The notes beneath the pieces are model-generated. The model worked only from the letters and a program-made list of their open reading frames with translations. It did not search any database and had not been told where the DNA came from. A stretch of 63,238 nucleotides of DNA, counting the filler, from Salisapilia sapeloensis CBS 127946 (taxonomy: Eukaryota > Protista > Oomycota), in NCBI GenBank assembly GCA_023334545.1. It is 10 parts of 10 records of this genome, joined end to end, with 100 filler letters (N's around TTAATTAATTAA, not from the genome) between each part and the next. Parts side by side here need not be neighbours in the genome. Positions count along the whole stretch, not along the records: positions 36,411 to 43,673 come from JAADVB010000523.1; 9 more parts are not named here. One strand, given 5' to 3'. Shown one piece after another: positions 36,411-43,673 of the stretch; the first letter of the stretch is position 1; every line of letters begins with the position of its first letter. A program made the position numbers and the translations under genes.

Positions 36411-36551
36411 TGGCTCACTTCCGCCGTTGGAACAATTGATAGTAGACAGAACTCGTGTGATCAAATACAAATAAACATGTAGTCTGTATAATCCTTTAAT
36501 CGTGTTCATGGCACTTAAGCACCAACATTAGAAGGTATTGACTCTGAATCT
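36411..36551 (+). repeat. Inverted repeat A, left copy (141 bp, runs into gap 3)
   Basis: Exact reverse complement of 43533-43673, compared base by base. Confidence 0.95.
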
Positions 36552-36759
36552 ACAGCCCAAGCATACGCTGCGTAGCTTGTACAATGTATAAATAGCTGAA
36601 CATGGAGAGGGATTGAATTTCTTCTTTGTCATAACTACTGGTAATTCTAGATGTACAAACTCATTTCGTGCTTCTTTGATTGTATTTGGATGTGATAATC
36701 ACATCCGATGTGAAGAGCTAAAAGCTAGACAGTTCAGACAGTTCAGACGGGAGGAACAT

Positions 36760-38680
36760 GTGAAAGTGACAAGATTGAAACAAGTGGCCGGACGACATAT
36801 CCATTGGGAGGTTATGTCTTCCGTCTTTGTGGCTGTTGTTGACAGATCTATTTCGACAAGCTCTCGATGCAGTCATTGACAAAACCGTGCGTACGTGAGG
36901 CTTATATTTAATTTGAAAAGCTAGAATCTGCATAGCAGACACTTGAATGAAACAGGCGAGTTTGGTGTTGTGAACCGAGGGGAGAAGCTGTGAAAACGGA
37001 TGGCAGGTACATTTGTGGACTGATAATACAGCTTGCTTATTTGTGGCTATTGCGATAAGATCTACTTCGATGCGATCTCGCGACAGTGCTTGGCGAGAAC
37101 GTGATGATCCTAACCGTAATAGCTTGGTATAAGGTTGATAGCCAACACTTGCGTGAGCGGGATGTCGAGTGTCATTCAGAAGCCGGAAATAAGACTGAAA
37201 AGAATAGCTGGCTGGCGCGGCCATGGAGAAGATGTGGCTTGGTTGATCGTATCAATACTTGGTGGACTAAATCGACGGGTTTGCGGCGTAGTGCTTGGCA
37301 AGACTGCATACGTGACGCTCATACCCGACGTGATCAGCTAGAAGATTGATATCAGACACTTCGATGGGAAAGGGCCGTGTGGTGGTAGCATGTGGAGAGA
37401 TTGCTCTGCTGGCGAGGACATGAAGAGGGTGTAGCTTGCTCCATTATGTTCATTCTTGGTGAATCTCATGTAATGGATTCGTGGCGCATGGCTTGGCGAC
37501 ACTGATTATGTGACAGTCATCCTTCTTGTGATCAGTTACGAGTCTGCTCGCAGGCATTTAAACTGGATGAACGTGTCATGCCAGCAAGACCCTGGAAGCA
37601 TGAGTCAAAAGAGCGGATAACCGGCGTGGTCGGAGACAGTATGGCTTGCTTCGTTGTGTCTATTGTTGGAATCCATATACGAACTCATGACGTAGTGCTT
37701 GGCGGCACTATGAATATAAAGCGTTCATAGTAAGCTTCAAGCGCTGGAAAGTTTCTCGCAGACGTTTAGATGGGAGAGGGGCATGTAGTGGAAACATGCC
37801 GCGTTGGTCAGCTTGGAAAGCGGACGGCAGGTGCCCGCATGGACAAATAATGCGGCTTGATTCGTTACGGTTACTGCTGAAAGATCTACTTTGATGGCGT
37901 CGTGTGTTGATGCTTGGCGAGACGTTGACTCCGCGGCGACCATGGCCGACGTGACGAGCTAGAAGCTTATTAGCAGACACTTAAATAGGCGGGCATGGGA
38001 TGCGAATGAGTCTTGTGATAAGGATGGAAGGAGCGTATGGACGGTATGGTCGCGGATCGGAGGTGGATTGCTCCATGATGTCGATCCTTAACGGACCCCA
38101 TGCGACGAATCTGTGGCGCATGGCATGGCGAGGATGTAAGCACTTGATGATCATATCCGATGTGACCAGGTGGAAGCCTACTCTCAGACGTTTGAATCGG
38201 AGACGCCTCCATTGACAGCGAGACACGAGGGCGAAGATTGGGAGGTATGGTCGGCCGGCATGCATGGGGAGAAGATTGGTGTACTCCTTTGTGTCGATTG
38301 TGGGTGGATCTCGTACCAGAGATTTGTGTCGCAGTGTTTGGCAAGGATTTATATGTGAACGGTGTGGTAGACGCGATGACGAAGGAGCGTGCTAGCAGAC
38401 ACTTGGATGGGCGAACGTGTCGGACGTCAGTGGGCTGCGGTAGCGAGATCGGGAGGAACGGGCAGCCGGCGTGATCATGAAGAAGATGTGGCTTGGTCTG
38501 TTGTGCTGATTGCTGATGGATCTGCTTCGACGGGCTCGCAACACAGTGGTGGAGGACGTGGCTCACGTGGCGATCATGCCCGACGTGACTTGCGAGGAGT
38601 TTGATAACAGGTACTTGGATGGTGCGAGTGTCTGATGCTAGCGAGACACGTGGAATGGCTAGGAAAGAGTGGATGGCAGA
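36760..38680. repeat. Degenerate tandem array of about nine ~210-bp units
   Basis: An anchor motif (tag/tcg)cagac(a/g)(c/t)tt..atgg recurs at ~36933, 37139, 37350, 37548, 37756, 37971, 38182, 38393 and 38605 (spacing 198-215). A second motif, gcttggc(g/a)a, and a third, agatcta, recur with the same period. Confidence 0.8.
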
Positions 38681-39745
38681 CAGGATTAAGTCGTCCTTGT
38701 CGAGAGTGGGGACATGACGATGCCTAGTACGAATATGAGTCCTTTCCGAAAGGAATGAAGGAAATGCGAGTCAAGTCAGCACGGCGAGCCCGCATCCATT
38801 GAAACAATCAGGAGCGATTTCAGAGTTGAGTATTCGTTTATAAGGGCGTATGTGGCCTCGGAGGAGGGGGCTTTTGTAAGATGCTTGCTGGATTACAGCA
38901 AAGGTTACAACCTCGAGTAGCGACTGGGTGCTGGAAGAAGAAATAACAATAACTTGGCATTTGCAAGCGTTAAAAAGCGTGGTGCTGGCTACGATTGTCT
39001 TTTTATGAAAAGAAGCATGAATGGGATATGAGAGTGACGAGGAAAAGAGCCAAGACCAAGAGCTAAATCATGTAAAAACAACGATTACAAGCGGAGCGTC
39101 TTGCCAAGGTATCGAAGCTCGTAGAAGCCGGTAGACACTCGTGGTCATTTATCGTATTTCATTTTGTTAGTATCGATCGTATAGGCTCTAATACGACGAG
39201 TGGTAGTCTTGCTTTGGAGTATATTCATTGCATATGCAATGAAACAATATATGAAGTTAAGCTACTCGGGTCTCGCTAGCCTACTTCACCTGTTTCGAAC
39301 GGAACTGAACGCTCTCTAGCGGGCGAGCGATTGCCGTGTACCTTATCATCAGATGTGCCGAGATCGTCGTATAGAATAGGTGTACATAACTCGATCTTAT
39401 AATGTAGAGGCTTGGTTGAAACGACCGTAACAACCAGCACGAGCCCCACAACCAGGACGACCCTCACGATATAGACATGCAGTCAAAATATCTGATGCGT
39501 TTCTATAGCACATTGATTTCCGCCAATGAGTAGCCGCAATGGTCACTTTTCTTCCATGGAAAAACATGAAAAAAGCCAATCCAAGGTAACTAGGACTGTC
39601 GTCGTGATCGTGCTTGTAAATTGGGTCTACCGACTAGCTTCCGGGACTAGCAGCTCCTTTACAATAGTGAAATCTAGTGAGTCGCACAGCCGGGACGCAC
39701 GGGAAGCACAACCACGAGCGACCTCATAAAATCAGAAGTTAAGAG

Positions 39746-41053
39746 ATGGAGCAAGACTTGATGCGCGGCAGCCAAAACTCGACGCCCTCGAGCGCGTCCC
39801 CCGACGAAAACACGCAGAATTCACCATCGCTTAACACCACGCAGGGCCCCACCACTCGCTCGCGCCGTCAAAACAACAGCGATGAGAGTCTCAATGGGAG
39901 CAGCAGCGACAAGGAGGATGGTGGCAGCGGCAGCGGCAGCGGGAGTGGTGGCAGCGGCAGCGCCAAACCTTCCTCCAACACCACCACTACAACCGGCGAC
40001 GCGAACTCTCCGGGCTCGTCCTCGTACGAGCAAAGCGGCTCCAACTCCGGCTTGACGCCGTCTCAACCGTCTGTTCCATCCACTGTGCCGGAAGCGAACG
40101 CGACACGCGCAGGTGGAAAGAAGCGATCGCGCTATTTGAAGCAGTCCGATCGGCGGAATATCATCCGTAGACTTCAGTCAGGAGAGAGGCAATCGGATCT
40201 CGCACGCGAGTACGGCGTCACGAGAGCTGCGATTTGCCACATAAACAAAAATCGGGCTGAAATTCTCTCCCGATCATTACGTTCTGAGATGGAGGTGACT
40301 GGCACACGCTTTGGGAACGATGCCTTTGTGATTACCAATCCGACACACTCGACGGAAGCGAATGAAATGTATCCAACTGTCTTGGAAGTGCGATCGCCTA
40401 CCATGACAGTGCTCTTGACTGCACTACGGAACAAGGAGTCTTCCTGCAGTCTCTTTCGTAACGCTGTCGATCGAGCGACACGATTGTTACTGGAAGAAGC
40501 CTTGGCCTGCAGTGCGACGAAGACGGTGAAGATCGTGACGGCCAGCGATATCCTGTGTGAAGGTATGGCGCCAACACAACGTTCGTTCGGTATATCCATG
40601 AGCGAGGCGGGTTTCATCATGCTTGAGTCGTTCCGGGCCATCCAACCAGATAGCCCGACTGGCTTCATCACGCTTGAGGATAGCACGGGGCGACATGGCG
40701 AACAGAAGCCGATGCTGAAACGCGTGTGCGCTCCTCCGAATCTCGGTCTCTTGGACGTCTTTCTCCTGGAAGCGACGCTAACGTCCGGCTTGCACGCTCT
40801 GACGTCCATCCAGGCCCTGTTGGACTTTGGTGCAAAGGAAACGTCTGTCATCCTCGTGTGCATCGCACTGAGTGCGAGCGCTGCGCAAGAGATCTTACGG
40901 CAATTCCCAAACGTCCGTATCGTCACGGCCAGTGTCGATCCGGCTGTGAATGACTCGAATATGCTTTGTCCTGGTATCGGCGACTTCCTCGAACGATACT
41001 TTAACATGACAGTCGTCCAGCACAATGGTGTCGGACTTAGTGTCGACCTATAA
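39746..41053 (+). CDS. Fusion of a Psq/CENP-B-type helix-turn-helix and a uracil-phosphoribosyltransferase-like domain, after a Ser/Gly/Thr-rich N-terminus
   Basis: HTH: RRNIIRRLQSGERQSDLAREYGVTRAAICHINKNR. UPRT-like part: LLTALRNKESSCSLFRNAVDRATRLLLEEAL ... FPNVRIVTASVD ... CPGIGDFLERYF. Confidence 0.85.
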   Translation: MEQDLMRGSQNSTPSSASPDENTQNSPSLNTTQGPTTRSRRQNNSDESLNGSSSDKEDGGSGSGSGSGGSGSAKPSSNTTTTTGDANSPGSSSYEQSGSNSGLTPSQPSVPSTVPEANATRAGGKKRSRYLKQSDRRNIIRRLQSGERQSDLAREYGVTRAAICHINKNRAEILSRSLRSEMEVTGTRFGNDAFVITNPTHSTEANEMYPTVLEVRSPTMTVLLTALRNKESSCSLFRNAVDRATRLLLEEALACSATKTVKIVTASDILCEGMAPTQRSFGISMSEAGFIMLESFRAIQPDSPTGFITLEDSTGRHGEQKPMLKRVCAPPNLGLLDVFLLEATLTSGLHALTSIQALLDFGAKETSVILVCIALSASAAQEILRQFPNVRIVTASVDPAVNDSNMLCPGIGDFLERYFNMTVVQHNGVGLSVDL

Positions 41054-41250
41054 GCCACGAGAGGCGAATGTATTCGGGAGATGAACGCCGTGCACGACAA
41101 AAAAGATTAATAATTTCATTCGTATGCAATCAAAGTACTTGCATTTCAATTGCTTCTTCTTGTCTACGAAAAGTTGGTCCACTGGATGATGGTACACGTG
41201 CAATGCGCCTCCTTTTTGCATGTCATTATCGTCCACCCGATTGTCCACGT

Positions 41251-43182
41251 CTAGCTATTTCCTTCGACCTTGGTCTTCTTTGTAGCCGGTTCATCCGCAT
41301 CCTCCTTCACGACTTCTGTCTCAGTAGAGGGAATGTAGATCTTGATGCCTGATAGCAAGTAGCCGCTGCAAGCGTTCATGTTCATATCCGGGTGGGTACG
41401 ACCTGGCAGCACTTGATACGCCCTTGTCCACGTCTCATTCAGCTGCAGATCGATCACATCCTCTCTTGCCTGTAGCGTCTTGAACGCCTTGGTCAATGGC
41501 TACAATCCACATGTTAGACGTCTACACGCGTGTCTACTTTGCTTTCCAAGATCTGTACCTCTAGATATTCACAATACGCAACAAAAGGCTTCGATGTGCC
41601 GAGGAGTGGTAGGAAGCGTTCAAGAAGTGCAGTCGGGTCGAACTGTGTGGCAGTGACAAGTGCATCGGAAGGCTGGCGCAACCAGTTGCGAATGACATGG
41701 GACGGCTGTTTAACGGCCTTGTTCGCTTTCTTCCGCTCTTTCTTCTCAGCATACTTTTGCTGTTCCTCTGGCGTAAAGTGTCTCGCTCTTTCGGCCTGCA
41801 AAGCCTTACGTTGCTCTGGCGTAAGTCCATCGCGCGGACCAGAAGGCTCTTCCACAATGTCTTCTTCTCGCTACGCACAACGTCTGCATGTCAGTAGTTT
41901 TATGCGAAGAGGGTGATCGAGGGAAGTACCTTGGACAGGAGCTGAAGATCCTTGTACTGGAAGAAGTGGATCGACTCGAGTGTCTTCTTGTCTGGGGTAA
42001 AGGTAAGTAGTGTCCAACTAAAAGTGCAGAAAGGGAAGATACCAAAGTTGAGGCGGCGAAGCGTGTCGACAGCAGGCTGTTGGCCTTGATACGCAGCGAG
42101 GATGCGACCGTTACCGGCCTGACGTTCGGCAATGGCTCCAGTGACGAGACCCATGGTGGTGTCAGCGACTAGCACCTGCGCTGTGGCGTGGATGTTGGCG
42201 TAGACGAGCATCTGTCCAAGCGAATCCTCTCGAAGGTTGCTATTCGATGCAAGGTGAGTGTCATGTCATGAGGATAGGAATCGTCTAGAAGAGAGCGTAC
42301 AGGATTTTGCCAGGGTTCTTAATACGATAGGTACGGCACAAGGTGTCGGCTGTCGAGCGCAGGAAGCGTACACGAGGCATGTACTTTTGCTGCTTCTTTT
42401 TAAGATACTTTTGCTTGGAGAACTCTGTTTTGGCCGTCCATGTTTCACTGTTGGCGACGAGCTGACTGATGATCTCTTCGCCAGTTGCACCTTGTTCTCG
42501 CAGCTCACCAATGGCAGAGGAAGAGAGCTTCTGAGCAGAGTTCGTGTCTGTGTATGCACGGTTGTCACTAGCGACATCTCCGACTTCACCCACTTCTACA
42601 TACACGACAGAGAAGGGTAAGTATGTCTATGTTTGCTTGGCAGAGTCATTCCAAGGGTTGGAATGGATGCATGGCGGATGCTGCGTTTGTAGATTACGTA
42701 CCGGGGGCGACAGGGTCTGGGAATAAACCACCGGTGACCTGGACTAGCTTATTGCCCTGGACTTCAAATATCGTCCTACATGGGAACTTGCGTTAGTACT
42801 GAATGAAGTGTAAAAATCGCTCTATGTTTATGACATGAAAGCATTCTTACCCGAACGAACTTCCGATGACAGGAGCGACGGACAGCATTTTTTTACCAGC
42901 ACGAATACTCGCACTAGATCATTGTATTTAGAATATAAGTATTTGATAATCTGTGTTTGTATCACAAACGTACCCGTCACGTTTAATCTCCTGGAAAAAT
43001 ATGCGACCGTCACTAGCCTCGCAAATGACCGTATCACCCTCGTAGATCACATTTGGATGCCGTTCTTCCGAGTCAGAAGATGCCACTGCCACTGGTCCAT
43101 TGGATGCATCATTTTTGTCGTCCTGATCATTGTTCAGAGAGTCATTGGAAGTAACCGGAGCTCCTACTGCTGCTGTAGACAT
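41251..43182 (-). CDS. TRM6: tRNA (adenine-58-N1)-methyltransferase non-catalytic subunit Trm6/Gcd10, multi-exon
   Basis: VIYEGDTVI, DNRAYTDTNSAQKLSSSAIGELREQGATGEEIISQLVANSETWTAKTEFSKQKYLKKKQQKY, QVLVADTTMGLVTGAIAER, WTRAYQVLPGRTHPDMNMNACSGYLLSGIK. Confidence 0.92.
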
Positions 43183-43532
43183 GCTTTGGTGCGAGTTTGT
43201 CCGCTATTGTGTCCAGTCACGGATGTTCAGCCAATCGTATACTTCTAGACTACTTTTTAGCCAATCCTAGTACTTGTCAATAGATCTTGAAGCATAGGAT
43301 AGTCATTGAGATAGAGCGCTCGATTCGATCGTGTTGACAAGCAAGACTAGCGGAAGCAAGGTAATAGTTAAGATGCTATGCCACCACAAAAGTAGTCGGT
43401 AATATTCCAGCAATCGTATTCATCAGCTTTGCGCTTATTTTTGACGTTTACTGATTATCTGAAGGGCTTAGAACAAAGACTCTTGAGATGCGGTACTGAC
43501 GCCATTTTTCGAACAGAAAAGTATCCGAGCTG

Positions 43533-43673
43533 AGATTCAGAGTCAATACCTTCTAATGTTGGTGCTTAAGTGCCATGAACACGATTAAAGGATTATACAG
43601 ACTACATGTTTATTTGTATTTGATCACACGAGTTCTGTCTACTATCAATTGTTCCAACGGCGGAAGTGAGCCA
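43533..43673 (-). repeat. Inverted repeat A, right copy (141 bp, runs into gap 4)
   Basis: Exact reverse complement of 36411-36551. Confidence 0.95.

Follow-up and report, generated by a model that had tools for sequence, protein, structure and literature searches.

A helix-turn-helix joined to a degenerate uracil phosphoribosyltransferase fold defines a family of putative DNA-binding regulators in oomycetes

The DNA analyzed here, referred to as the window, is a stretch of 63,238 nucleotides from the oomycete Salisapilia sapeloensis CBS 127946 (assembly GCA_023334545.1), consisting of ten parts of ten records joined end to end with filler between them. Within the piece at positions 36411-43673, which comes from record JAADVB010000523.1, there is a single long open reading frame (ORF), 39746-41053 on the plus strand, and its product is called the window protein below. 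A sequence-only reading of the locus had proposed that this gene fuses a Psq/CENP-B-like helix-turn-helix (HTH) to a full-length but altered uracil phosphoribosyltransferase (UPRT), and that the product is a transcription factor sensing pyrimidines or 5-phosphoribosyl-1-pyrophosphate (PRPP). The reading frame is uninterrupted, and its start codon is the first ATG downstream of an in-frame stop. Coordinates of the gene and its parts are collected in Table 1.

Transcript data were taken from four public runs, which represent at most three samples of one study and are labeled only "RNA?". These runs were treated as transcript assemblies because they skip the seven introns of a convergent minus-strand gene matching Gcd10p, because their contigs break at gene boundaries, and because read depth is ~0 in the intergenic interval 39330-39519. 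Contigs from three of the runs (X1, 39675-41131; X2, 39685-41145; X3, 39623-41140) are colinear with the genome, contain 0 gaps or joints, and bracket the ORF; contigs of all four runs cover the full HTH-UPRT ORF colinearly. Since the same contigs splice out the seven introns of the Gcd10p neighbor, the HTH and UPRT parts belong to a single ORF that is transcribed without a break and left unspliced. A contig stands for continuous coverage and not for one molecule, and the contig of run X4, in which the HTH-UPRT gene is merged with the Gcd10p gene, shows that contigs can bridge separate transcripts. The gene is expressed, intronless, and one transcribed unit, in agreement with the sequence-only reading. 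Separate transcripts for the two parts, which that reading had named as counting against it, were not seen; the contigs span both domains.

The first 121 residues had been described as rich in Ser, Gly, and Thr, and their composition bears this out (26%, 12%, and 12%, respectively); this region varies in length and sequence among homologues. Next comes the HTH, from which the string QSDLAREYGVTRAAICHI had been quoted; it is located at residues 149 to 166. Pfam places CENP-B_N (PF04218) at residues 138 to 175 with an E value of 3.2e-4 and a score of 20.7 bits, against a gathering score of 21.2, and 17 of 18 homologues matched the same domain with E values of 0.01 or lower (best E, 2.4e-11). A profile of the family HTH matched PDB entry 2elh, the Psq-type/CENP-B N-terminal domain of Drosophila Dan, at E 1.2e-4. 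The region contains 16 Lys and Arg versus 6 Asp and Glu residues, a net charge of about +10. When the HTH was modeled separately with AlphaFold2, the helices were predicted with a local distance difference test score (pLDDT) of >90, and a three-helix HTH fold with a basic N-terminal arm was obtained. Foldseek matched this model to 2elh first and to the CENP-B-DNA complex 1hlv next, with template modeling (TM) scores of 0.64 to 0.71 and weak E values of 0.08 to 0.1, and then to Pax paired domains; the fit to 1hlv had a TM score of 0.71 and a root mean square deviation of 1.3 A over 50 columns. Neither a second CENP-B-type domain nor a transposase remnant was detected in the window protein by the Pfam scan.

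The claim of a full-length UPRT fold is likewise well founded. Pfam UPRTase (PF14681) matches residues 217 to 420 at E 8.2e-33 and covers profile positions 4 to 205 of 206, and the closest solved relative by sequence is the UPRT of Toxoplasma gondii (1upf/1bd3; E 1e-20). An AlphaFold2 model of residues 119 to 435, computed from a 70-sequence family alignment (mean pLDDT, 89), predicts an HTH region of four helices, followed by a disordered linker and then a compact alpha/beta domain. In Foldseek searches, this alpha/beta domain matched T. gondii UPRT at E 2e-22 to 1e-19 with TM scores, by target, of 0.83 to 0.88 and matched Candida albicans Fur1p with a TM score of 0.90; bacterial and archaeal UPRTs were also matched. 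PyrR and purine phosphoribosyltransferases (PRTs) reached only ~1e-5, and PurR was not among the 50 best structural matches of the domain. The NCBIfam equivalog models for upp scored far under their cutoffs (NF001097, 70.6 versus 114; TIGR01091, 61.3 versus 208.35). The residues common to canonical and fused proteins (R243, E250, E251, G289, P301, G306, P330, G362, P388, and R417) look like core or structural positions in the alignments.

Relatives of the window protein were collected in two ways. A word-indexed protein search returned 27 relatives, at most 48% identical, the named ones being from Pythium, Globisporangium, and Phytophthora, and an exhaustive profile search gave 4326 matches at E<=1e-3 and 303 at E<=1e-30. 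When 162 fetched proteins were scanned with local hidden Markov models of both domains, an HTH followed by a UPRT domain was found in 143, which come from independent genomes and metagenomes; because it recurs to this extent, the architecture is beyond chance. All members with a named source are oomycetes, and six species each have two or more named paralogs. The sources include Albugo laibachii, Lagenidium giganteum, Pythium oligandrum, P. insidiosum, P. brassicae, Globisporangium ultimum, G. splendens, Phytophthora ramorum, P. infestans, P. lilii, and P. nicotianae, among others, and in the nearest ESM Atlas cluster, all 52 members are Oomycota. By sequence, the gene belongs to a large family found so far only in oomycetes.

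Within the fused family, the HTH is far better conserved than the enzyme domain (mean pairwise identity, 64% versus 29%), and selection therefore acts mainly on the DNA-binding part. R142, G146, Q149, A153, and K168 of the HTH are invariant, and R160, C164, and R170 are found in 96 to 99% of members. The UPRT domain was compared with its canonical counterparts. In Mycobacterium tuberculosis UPRT, Arg77 of the RAG motif and Arg102 of the flexible loop have been ascribed roles in PRPP binding and catalysis, and Asp198 a role in catalysis (PMC3570474). In T. gondii UPRT, uracil or 5-fluorouracil (5-FU) is held mainly by the backbone of Y227, I229, G234, and F236, with further contacts from D235, M166, and A168 (PMC10970046). 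Three canonical UPRTs obtained in the same search carry S[IV]xRAG, ILIQRDE, [LV]DPM[LC][AG]TGGS, and PG[LI]GD[YF]GDRY. The corresponding strings quoted earlier from the window protein (MSEAG, LLEATLTSGLH, and PGIGDFLERYF) all lie, like QSDLAREYGVTRAAICHI, where the sequence-only reading had put them. In the PRPP loop, the canonical D-P is replaced by E342-A343 and TGGS by SGLH. The Asp198/D235 equivalent is kept as D413, the PGIGDF segment is identical to that of T. gondii UPRT, and the equivalents of the stacking residues Y227/Y228 are N405/M406.

The loss of catalytic and PRPP-binding residues extends to the family. Among the 143 fused members, counted in each case over those aligned at the position, the RAG Arg is kept in 4/131 and the flexible-loop Arg in 10/125. 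In the PRPP loop, Pro is kept in 5/123, Met in 0/123, the second Gly in 6/124, and Ser in 13/124; the second-Gly position is acidic in 55/124, the loop Asp is kept in half of the family, and [TS]-G is kept in 65 to 73%. The C-terminal hood motif is unaligned in more than half of the members (<=58/143 aligned there). In the ten-member clade that contains the window protein, E287, R297, T309-L310, and the hood PGxG[ND]FxERY are 80 to 100% conserved, and the flexible loop (residues 311 to 320), the phosphate loop (residues 342 to 350), N405, and M406 are variable. Judging from these alignments, catalytic activity is almost certainly lost in the window protein and in the family. A base-sized, uracil-like pocket may persist, in this clade only, because the window PGIGDF is identical to the uracil-binding segment of T. 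gondii UPRT; a site for PRPP or a nucleotide is unlikely.

In a quick maximum-likelihood tree, 67 fused sequences were separated from the three canonical UPRTs with an SH-aLRT support of 100, which suggests, with three outgroup sequences only, a single origin of the HTH-UPRT fusion. The window protein lies inside the clade of ten from Pythium, Globisporangium, and Lagenidium (support, 99), on a branch of 0.78. The HTH-UPRT pair occurs twice in one chain in P0006 (Pythium oligandrum Poli38472_001062) and in P0028; in the latter, the first UPRT is reduced to 44 residues and the second is truncated at the end of the protein. Four relatives with an HTH only (P0024 to P0027) were considered as a separate architecture and rejected: they end directly past the HTH, or enter UPRT sequence past a junk stretch, and represent members of this family whose gene models are truncated or mis-spliced. 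In P. ramorum (JAZGLR010000001.1, 3790-9842), the paralogs PRIC2_002575 and PRIC2_002576 stand head to head, ~830 bp apart. The 834-residue model of PRIC2_002576 also carries a Cpn60_TCP1 match and is probably two genes merged by annotation.

Collectively, these findings suggest, with a probability that we put at about 55%, that the gene encodes a DNA-binding regulator in which a dead UPRT serves as an oligomerization module and in which ligand control is possible. The protein would then be one of the putative sequence-specific DNA-binding transcription or chromatin regulators in a family that is restricted to oomycetes and has expanded greatly. The constrained Psq/CENP-B-type HTH and its basic KRxRYL arm would contact DNA, the arm possibly doubling as a nuclear localization signal, and a flexible linker would tether the HTH to a domain with a complete UPRT fold but without PRPP-binding and catalytic residues. 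Because UPRTs are obligate dimers or tetramers, the dead UPRT domain would most likely act as an oligomerization module that pairs two HTHs on a bipartite site; the double-module chains P0006 and P0028 fit a functional unit of two HTH-UPRT modules. In some clades, including that of the window protein, the domain may also offer a small-molecule pocket that modulates DNA binding, and its effector, if any, would more probably be a pyrimidine base under the retained hood than PRPP or a nucleotide. What the data show is the architecture, the single unspliced transcribed unit, the folds, the missing catalytic motifs, the pattern of conservation, and the taxonomic spread; DNA binding, nuclear function, dimerization, and any ligand control are properties that we infer for the window protein.

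Several observations weigh against this interpretation. The window HTH scores just under the Pfam gathering threshold (20.7 versus 21.2 bits), and its Foldseek E values are weak (0.08 to 0.2), as is expected for a length of 61 residues. The recognition helix is almost invariant across many paralogs, which is unusual for a diversifying transcription factor family and could reflect a shared, non-promoter target. Dimerization is extrapolated from canonical UPRTs. Finally, the window protein sits on a long branch and departs from its clade: residue 281 is Phe, against Cys in 91% of the family, and its linker is without the basic ARHPKRG(M/L)YTTS motif located C-terminal to the HTH in most clade relatives. 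The codon of Phe281 lies at 40586-40588, and Cys occupies the position in two of the three canonical UPRTs.

A PurR-like metabolite-sensing transcription factor would share this architecture; in it, the pseudo-UPRT pocket would bind uracil, UMP, UTP, or PRPP, and its occupancy would switch DNA binding at pyrimidine salvage or synthesis genes. We regard this as possible but on the whole unlikely. Regulators combining an HTH with a PRT fold exist in bacteria (PurR; PMC8789054) and archaea (GfcR; PMC10838023). The hood is strongly conserved in the window clade, and in the window protein it includes PGIGDF, identical to the T. gondii segment whose backbone binds uracil or 5-FU (PMC10970046), with D413 kept, and the family partly retains the loop Asp and [TS]-G. 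However, the PRPP pyrophosphate-binding residues are acidic here (E287 and D312), the phosphate loop is variable even in the ten nearest orthologues with its second Gly often acidic across the family, and the base-contacting tyrosines are replaced at positions unconserved in the clade. Over the fused family, moreover, the hood is mostly unaligned, and PurR and GfcR keep a PRPP-motif loop for their effectors, whereas the HTH-UPRT family does not. Given E287, D312, and the degenerate loop, PRPP sensing was rejected as the leading model, and PRPP itself, which the sequence-only reading had named among the ligands, is a very improbable effector. Sensing of a pyrimidine base is possible in the window clade because PGIGDF is identical to the T. 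gondii segment and D413 is kept. The role of ligand sensor is a hypothesis that goes beyond what conservation implies, and of the proposed eukaryotic PurR analogue, the architecture of an HTH with a noncatalytic PRT domain stands but the effector-binding PRPP loop is not conserved. A bolder and decidedly unlikely extension is a one-component sensor system found in no eukaryotes but oomycetes, in which several paralogs in each genome share a near-invariant DNA-reading head and their dead-UPRT pockets have diversified for different small molecules. The ligands would be bases, nucleosides, or unrelated metabolites, and many signals would converge on a common cis-element. If true, this would be an independent reinvention of the PurR/GfcR principle in a third domain of life, and major crop and animal pathogens would possess a new class of ligand-gated transcription factor.

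CENP-B pairs an N-terminal HTH with a C-terminal dimerization domain, and by analogy the window protein might be a ligand-independent chromatin or repeat binder, with a pogo/Tc1 transposase-derived HTH recognizing one shared genomic element and a dead UPRT that only dimerizes. The HTH is of the class found in CENP-B, Pipsqueak, and pogo transposases, and a near-invariant recognition helix across paralogs whose enzyme domains are only 29% identical is what binding of the same element would produce. This explanation is nevertheless quite improbable: Pfam detected no transposase remnant or second CENP-B-type domain, dimerization alone less readily explains many paralogs with fast-diverging C-terminal domains, and the strong hood conservation at the clade level suggests more than a scaffold. 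It is extremely unlikely that the protein is an active UPRT with an extra N-terminal domain or a pseudoenzyme that binds or regulates a canonical UPRT, even though the full fold and D413, the equivalent of the proposed catalytic Asp, are kept, some members bear the database label "uracil phosphoribosyltransferase," and the canonical oomycete UPRT of Achlya hypogyna (OQR98951) is a possible partner. The window protein and >90% of the family have lost both PRPP arginines together with the DPM..TGGS loop, on which grounds an active enzyme was rejected; the protein falls far under the NCBIfam equivalog cutoffs; and selection is strongest on the HTH rather than on the enzyme domain. As for two adjacent genes read as one ORF through a gene-model or assembly artifact, nothing was found in its favor save the X4 contig that bridges the Gcd10p gene, and the chance is negligible: the idea is effectively refuted by the uninterrupted frame, by contig ends that bracket the ORF in three runs, and by the recurrence of the order HTH-linker-UPRT in the 143 proteins.

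The interpretation as an HTH-bearing regulator with a dead UPRT has counterparts among known systems. PurR of Bacillus subtilis and Lactococcus likewise joins an N-terminal DNA-binding domain to a noncatalytic PRT-fold domain (PMC10838023; PMC8789054). Unlike the window protein, it is bacterial, has a winged helix in place of a Psq HTH, and has a PRT domain outside the UPRT subfamily. PurR also keeps its PRPP-binding motif, which is used for PRPP and (p)ppGpp (PMC10838023), whereas the window protein has lost the loop and both PRPP arginines. GfcR (PyrE1) of Haloferax volcanii combines an HTH with an inactive PRT fold from a pyrimidine enzyme, orotate PRT (OPRT); it binds promoters and responds to phosphorylated effectors, with the 5'-phosphate loop retained for sugar-phosphate effectors (PMC10838023). 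It differs in being an archaeal, OPRT-derived, single small protein without a low-complexity N terminus. Since the HTH here is Psq-type and not winged-helix and the PRT is UPRT-type (E 1e-22), there is no common descent with PurR or GfcR: the HTH-UPRT protein is an analogue of these regulators, not a homologue, and an independent reinvention in eukaryotes. PurR and GfcR are the closest systems by function, and Fur1-type UPRTs and Psq/CENP-B HTHs are the closest by descent.

Canonical eukaryotic UPRTs (T. gondii, Fur1p of yeast and Candida, and Achlya OQR98951) have the same fold, 28 to 29% identity, and the PGIGDF..RYF segment; in contrast to them, the window protein is without the RAG Arg, the QRDE loop, and DPM..TGGS and adds an HTH and a low-complexity region. 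The basic-armed three-helix HTH of the CENP-B/Psq group (Dan 2elh, human CENP-B 1hlv, and pogo transposases) gives the best match by Pfam, profile, and structure, but the window protein has a single copy of the motif, no BTB, transposase, or second CENP-B domain, and a fusion to an enzyme fold. Reuse of the UPRT fold in multidomain or apparently inactive eukaryotic proteins is also seen in the animal UPRT homologue and in plant and animal uridine kinase-UPRT fusions, where the partner is a kinase or none rather than a DNA-binding domain; ESM Atlas structural neighbors include PRK/uridine-kinase-UPRT clusters and an arthropod "UPRT homolog" cluster. Bacillus PyrR is a PRT-fold regulator of pyrimidine genes that responds to uridine nucleotides; it binds RNA, retains UPRT activity at a weak level, and is without an HTH. 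In structure, it matches the UPRT-fold domain only distantly (E ~1e-5; TM, 0.63 to 0.65).

A search of the full-text literature found no description of an HTH-UPRT fusion or its function, as the sequence-only reading had supposed, and the main text of a 2009 survey of fusion proteins in Phytophthora sojae mentions only the fusion of orotidine monophosphate decarboxylase to OPRT (OMPDC-OPRT). The sequences themselves are already in databases as "Uracil phosphoribosyltransferase" or "HTH psq-type domain-containing protein," and the family is undescribed functionally. That oomycete copies would be annotated plainly as UPRT was correctly anticipated: P. infestans KAF4029338 and G. splendens proteins carry that name. 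The label is misleading, the catalytic motifs being gone, and a metabolic reconstruction in which HTH-UPRT genes are scored as UPRT would credit the organism with too much capacity for pyrimidine salvage. Important pathogens of plants and animals, among them Phytophthora, Pythium, Albugo, and Lagenidium, are oomycetes, a group whose transcription factor repertoire is poorly characterized. If the proteins bind DNA, they would add a lineage-specific class of regulators and a eukaryotic case of a salvage enzyme turned regulator, a transition so far documented for bacterial PurR and PyrR and archaeal GfcR.

Table 1. The HTH-UPRT gene of S. sapeloensis and its parts (window coordinates)
Feature	Coordinates	Strand	Basis
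Complete ORF, 435 residues plus stop	39746..41053	+	ORF call
mRNA extent, unspliced; 5' untranslated region ~60-120 nt, 3' untranslated region ~80-90 nt	39623..41145	+	Transcript assemblies
Low-complexity S/G/T/N-rich N-terminal region, residues 1-121	39746..40108	+	Composition; alignment
Psq/CENP-B-type HTH, residues 126-186: basic KRSRYL arm, four helices, recognition helix TRAAICHINKNR	40121..40303	+	Pfam, profile, AlphaFold2, Foldseek
Interdomain linker, residues 187-208	40304..40369	+	Predicted disorder ~residues 190-205, pLDDT 40-57; alignment
Catalytically degenerate UPRT-fold domain, residues 209-420	40370..41005	+	Pfam, PDB match, Foldseek
MSEAG, residues 285-289, in place of xxRAG; Glu287 at PRPP-binding Arg (M. 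tuberculosis R77)	40598..40612	+	Alignments
Asp312 at flexible-loop Arg of QRDE (M. tuberculosis R102)	40679..40681	+	Alignments
LLEATLTSGLH, residues 340-350, degenerate PRPP/5'-phosphate loop; canonical [LV]DPM[LC][AG]TGGS	40763..40795	+	Alignments
PGIGDFLERYF, residues 409-419, retained C-terminal hood/uracil-pocket segment	40970..41002	+	Alignments
Clade-specific C-terminal tail, 15 residues, MTVVQHNGVGLSVDL, plus stop codon	41006..41053	+	Past canonical UPRT end

In the C-terminal tail, G430 and L435 are kept in 90% of the clade, and alignment shows the tail to be absent from Phytophthora paralogs. A canonical UPRT is also present in oomycetes: the Achlya protein (OQR98951.1; P0156), one of the three canonical UPRTs retrieved, is catalytically intact and has a 120-residue N-terminal extension (residues 1 to 122). 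The extension contains a CxxC...H...C pattern (KCKFC...GHLKRC) that by eye resembles a BED-type zinc finger, and the Pfam search of residues 1 to 122 returned nothing at E<=1. Should the finger be genuine, UPRT would have been combined with a possible DNA-binding module a second time, independently, in oomycetes; a gene-model artifact is another possibility.

The convergent neighbor of the HTH-UPRT gene (41119-43225, minus strand) has seven introns of 51 to 106 nt, which read CT..AC on the plus and GT..AG on the minus strand. One of its exons matches Pfam Gcd10p, the noncatalytic subunit TRM6 of the tRNA m1A58 methyltransferase, at E 7e-30, and its 3' end abuts or overlaps that of the HTH-UPRT mRNA near 41119-41145. 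Upstream, 36690-38800 (plus strand) holds a decayed direct-repeat array with units of ~205 to 212 nt, cores spaced 203 to 213, 417, and 621 nt apart, and 60 to 85% identity. The array has a strong G-over-C skew of +0.22 to +0.33 on the plus strand, is without an ORF of >200 residues, and is covered in 4/4 runs by transcript contigs of ~2.5 kb (38000 to ~39203-39260, and >1.2 kb further upstream). Possible readings of it are a transcribed repeat, a long noncoding RNA, and a decayed repeat-protein gene. Near the other edge of the piece, low-depth transcript contigs at 43306-43615 (plus strand), with one GT..AG joint skipping 43398-43463, are the beginning of another gene, cut by the end of the piece.

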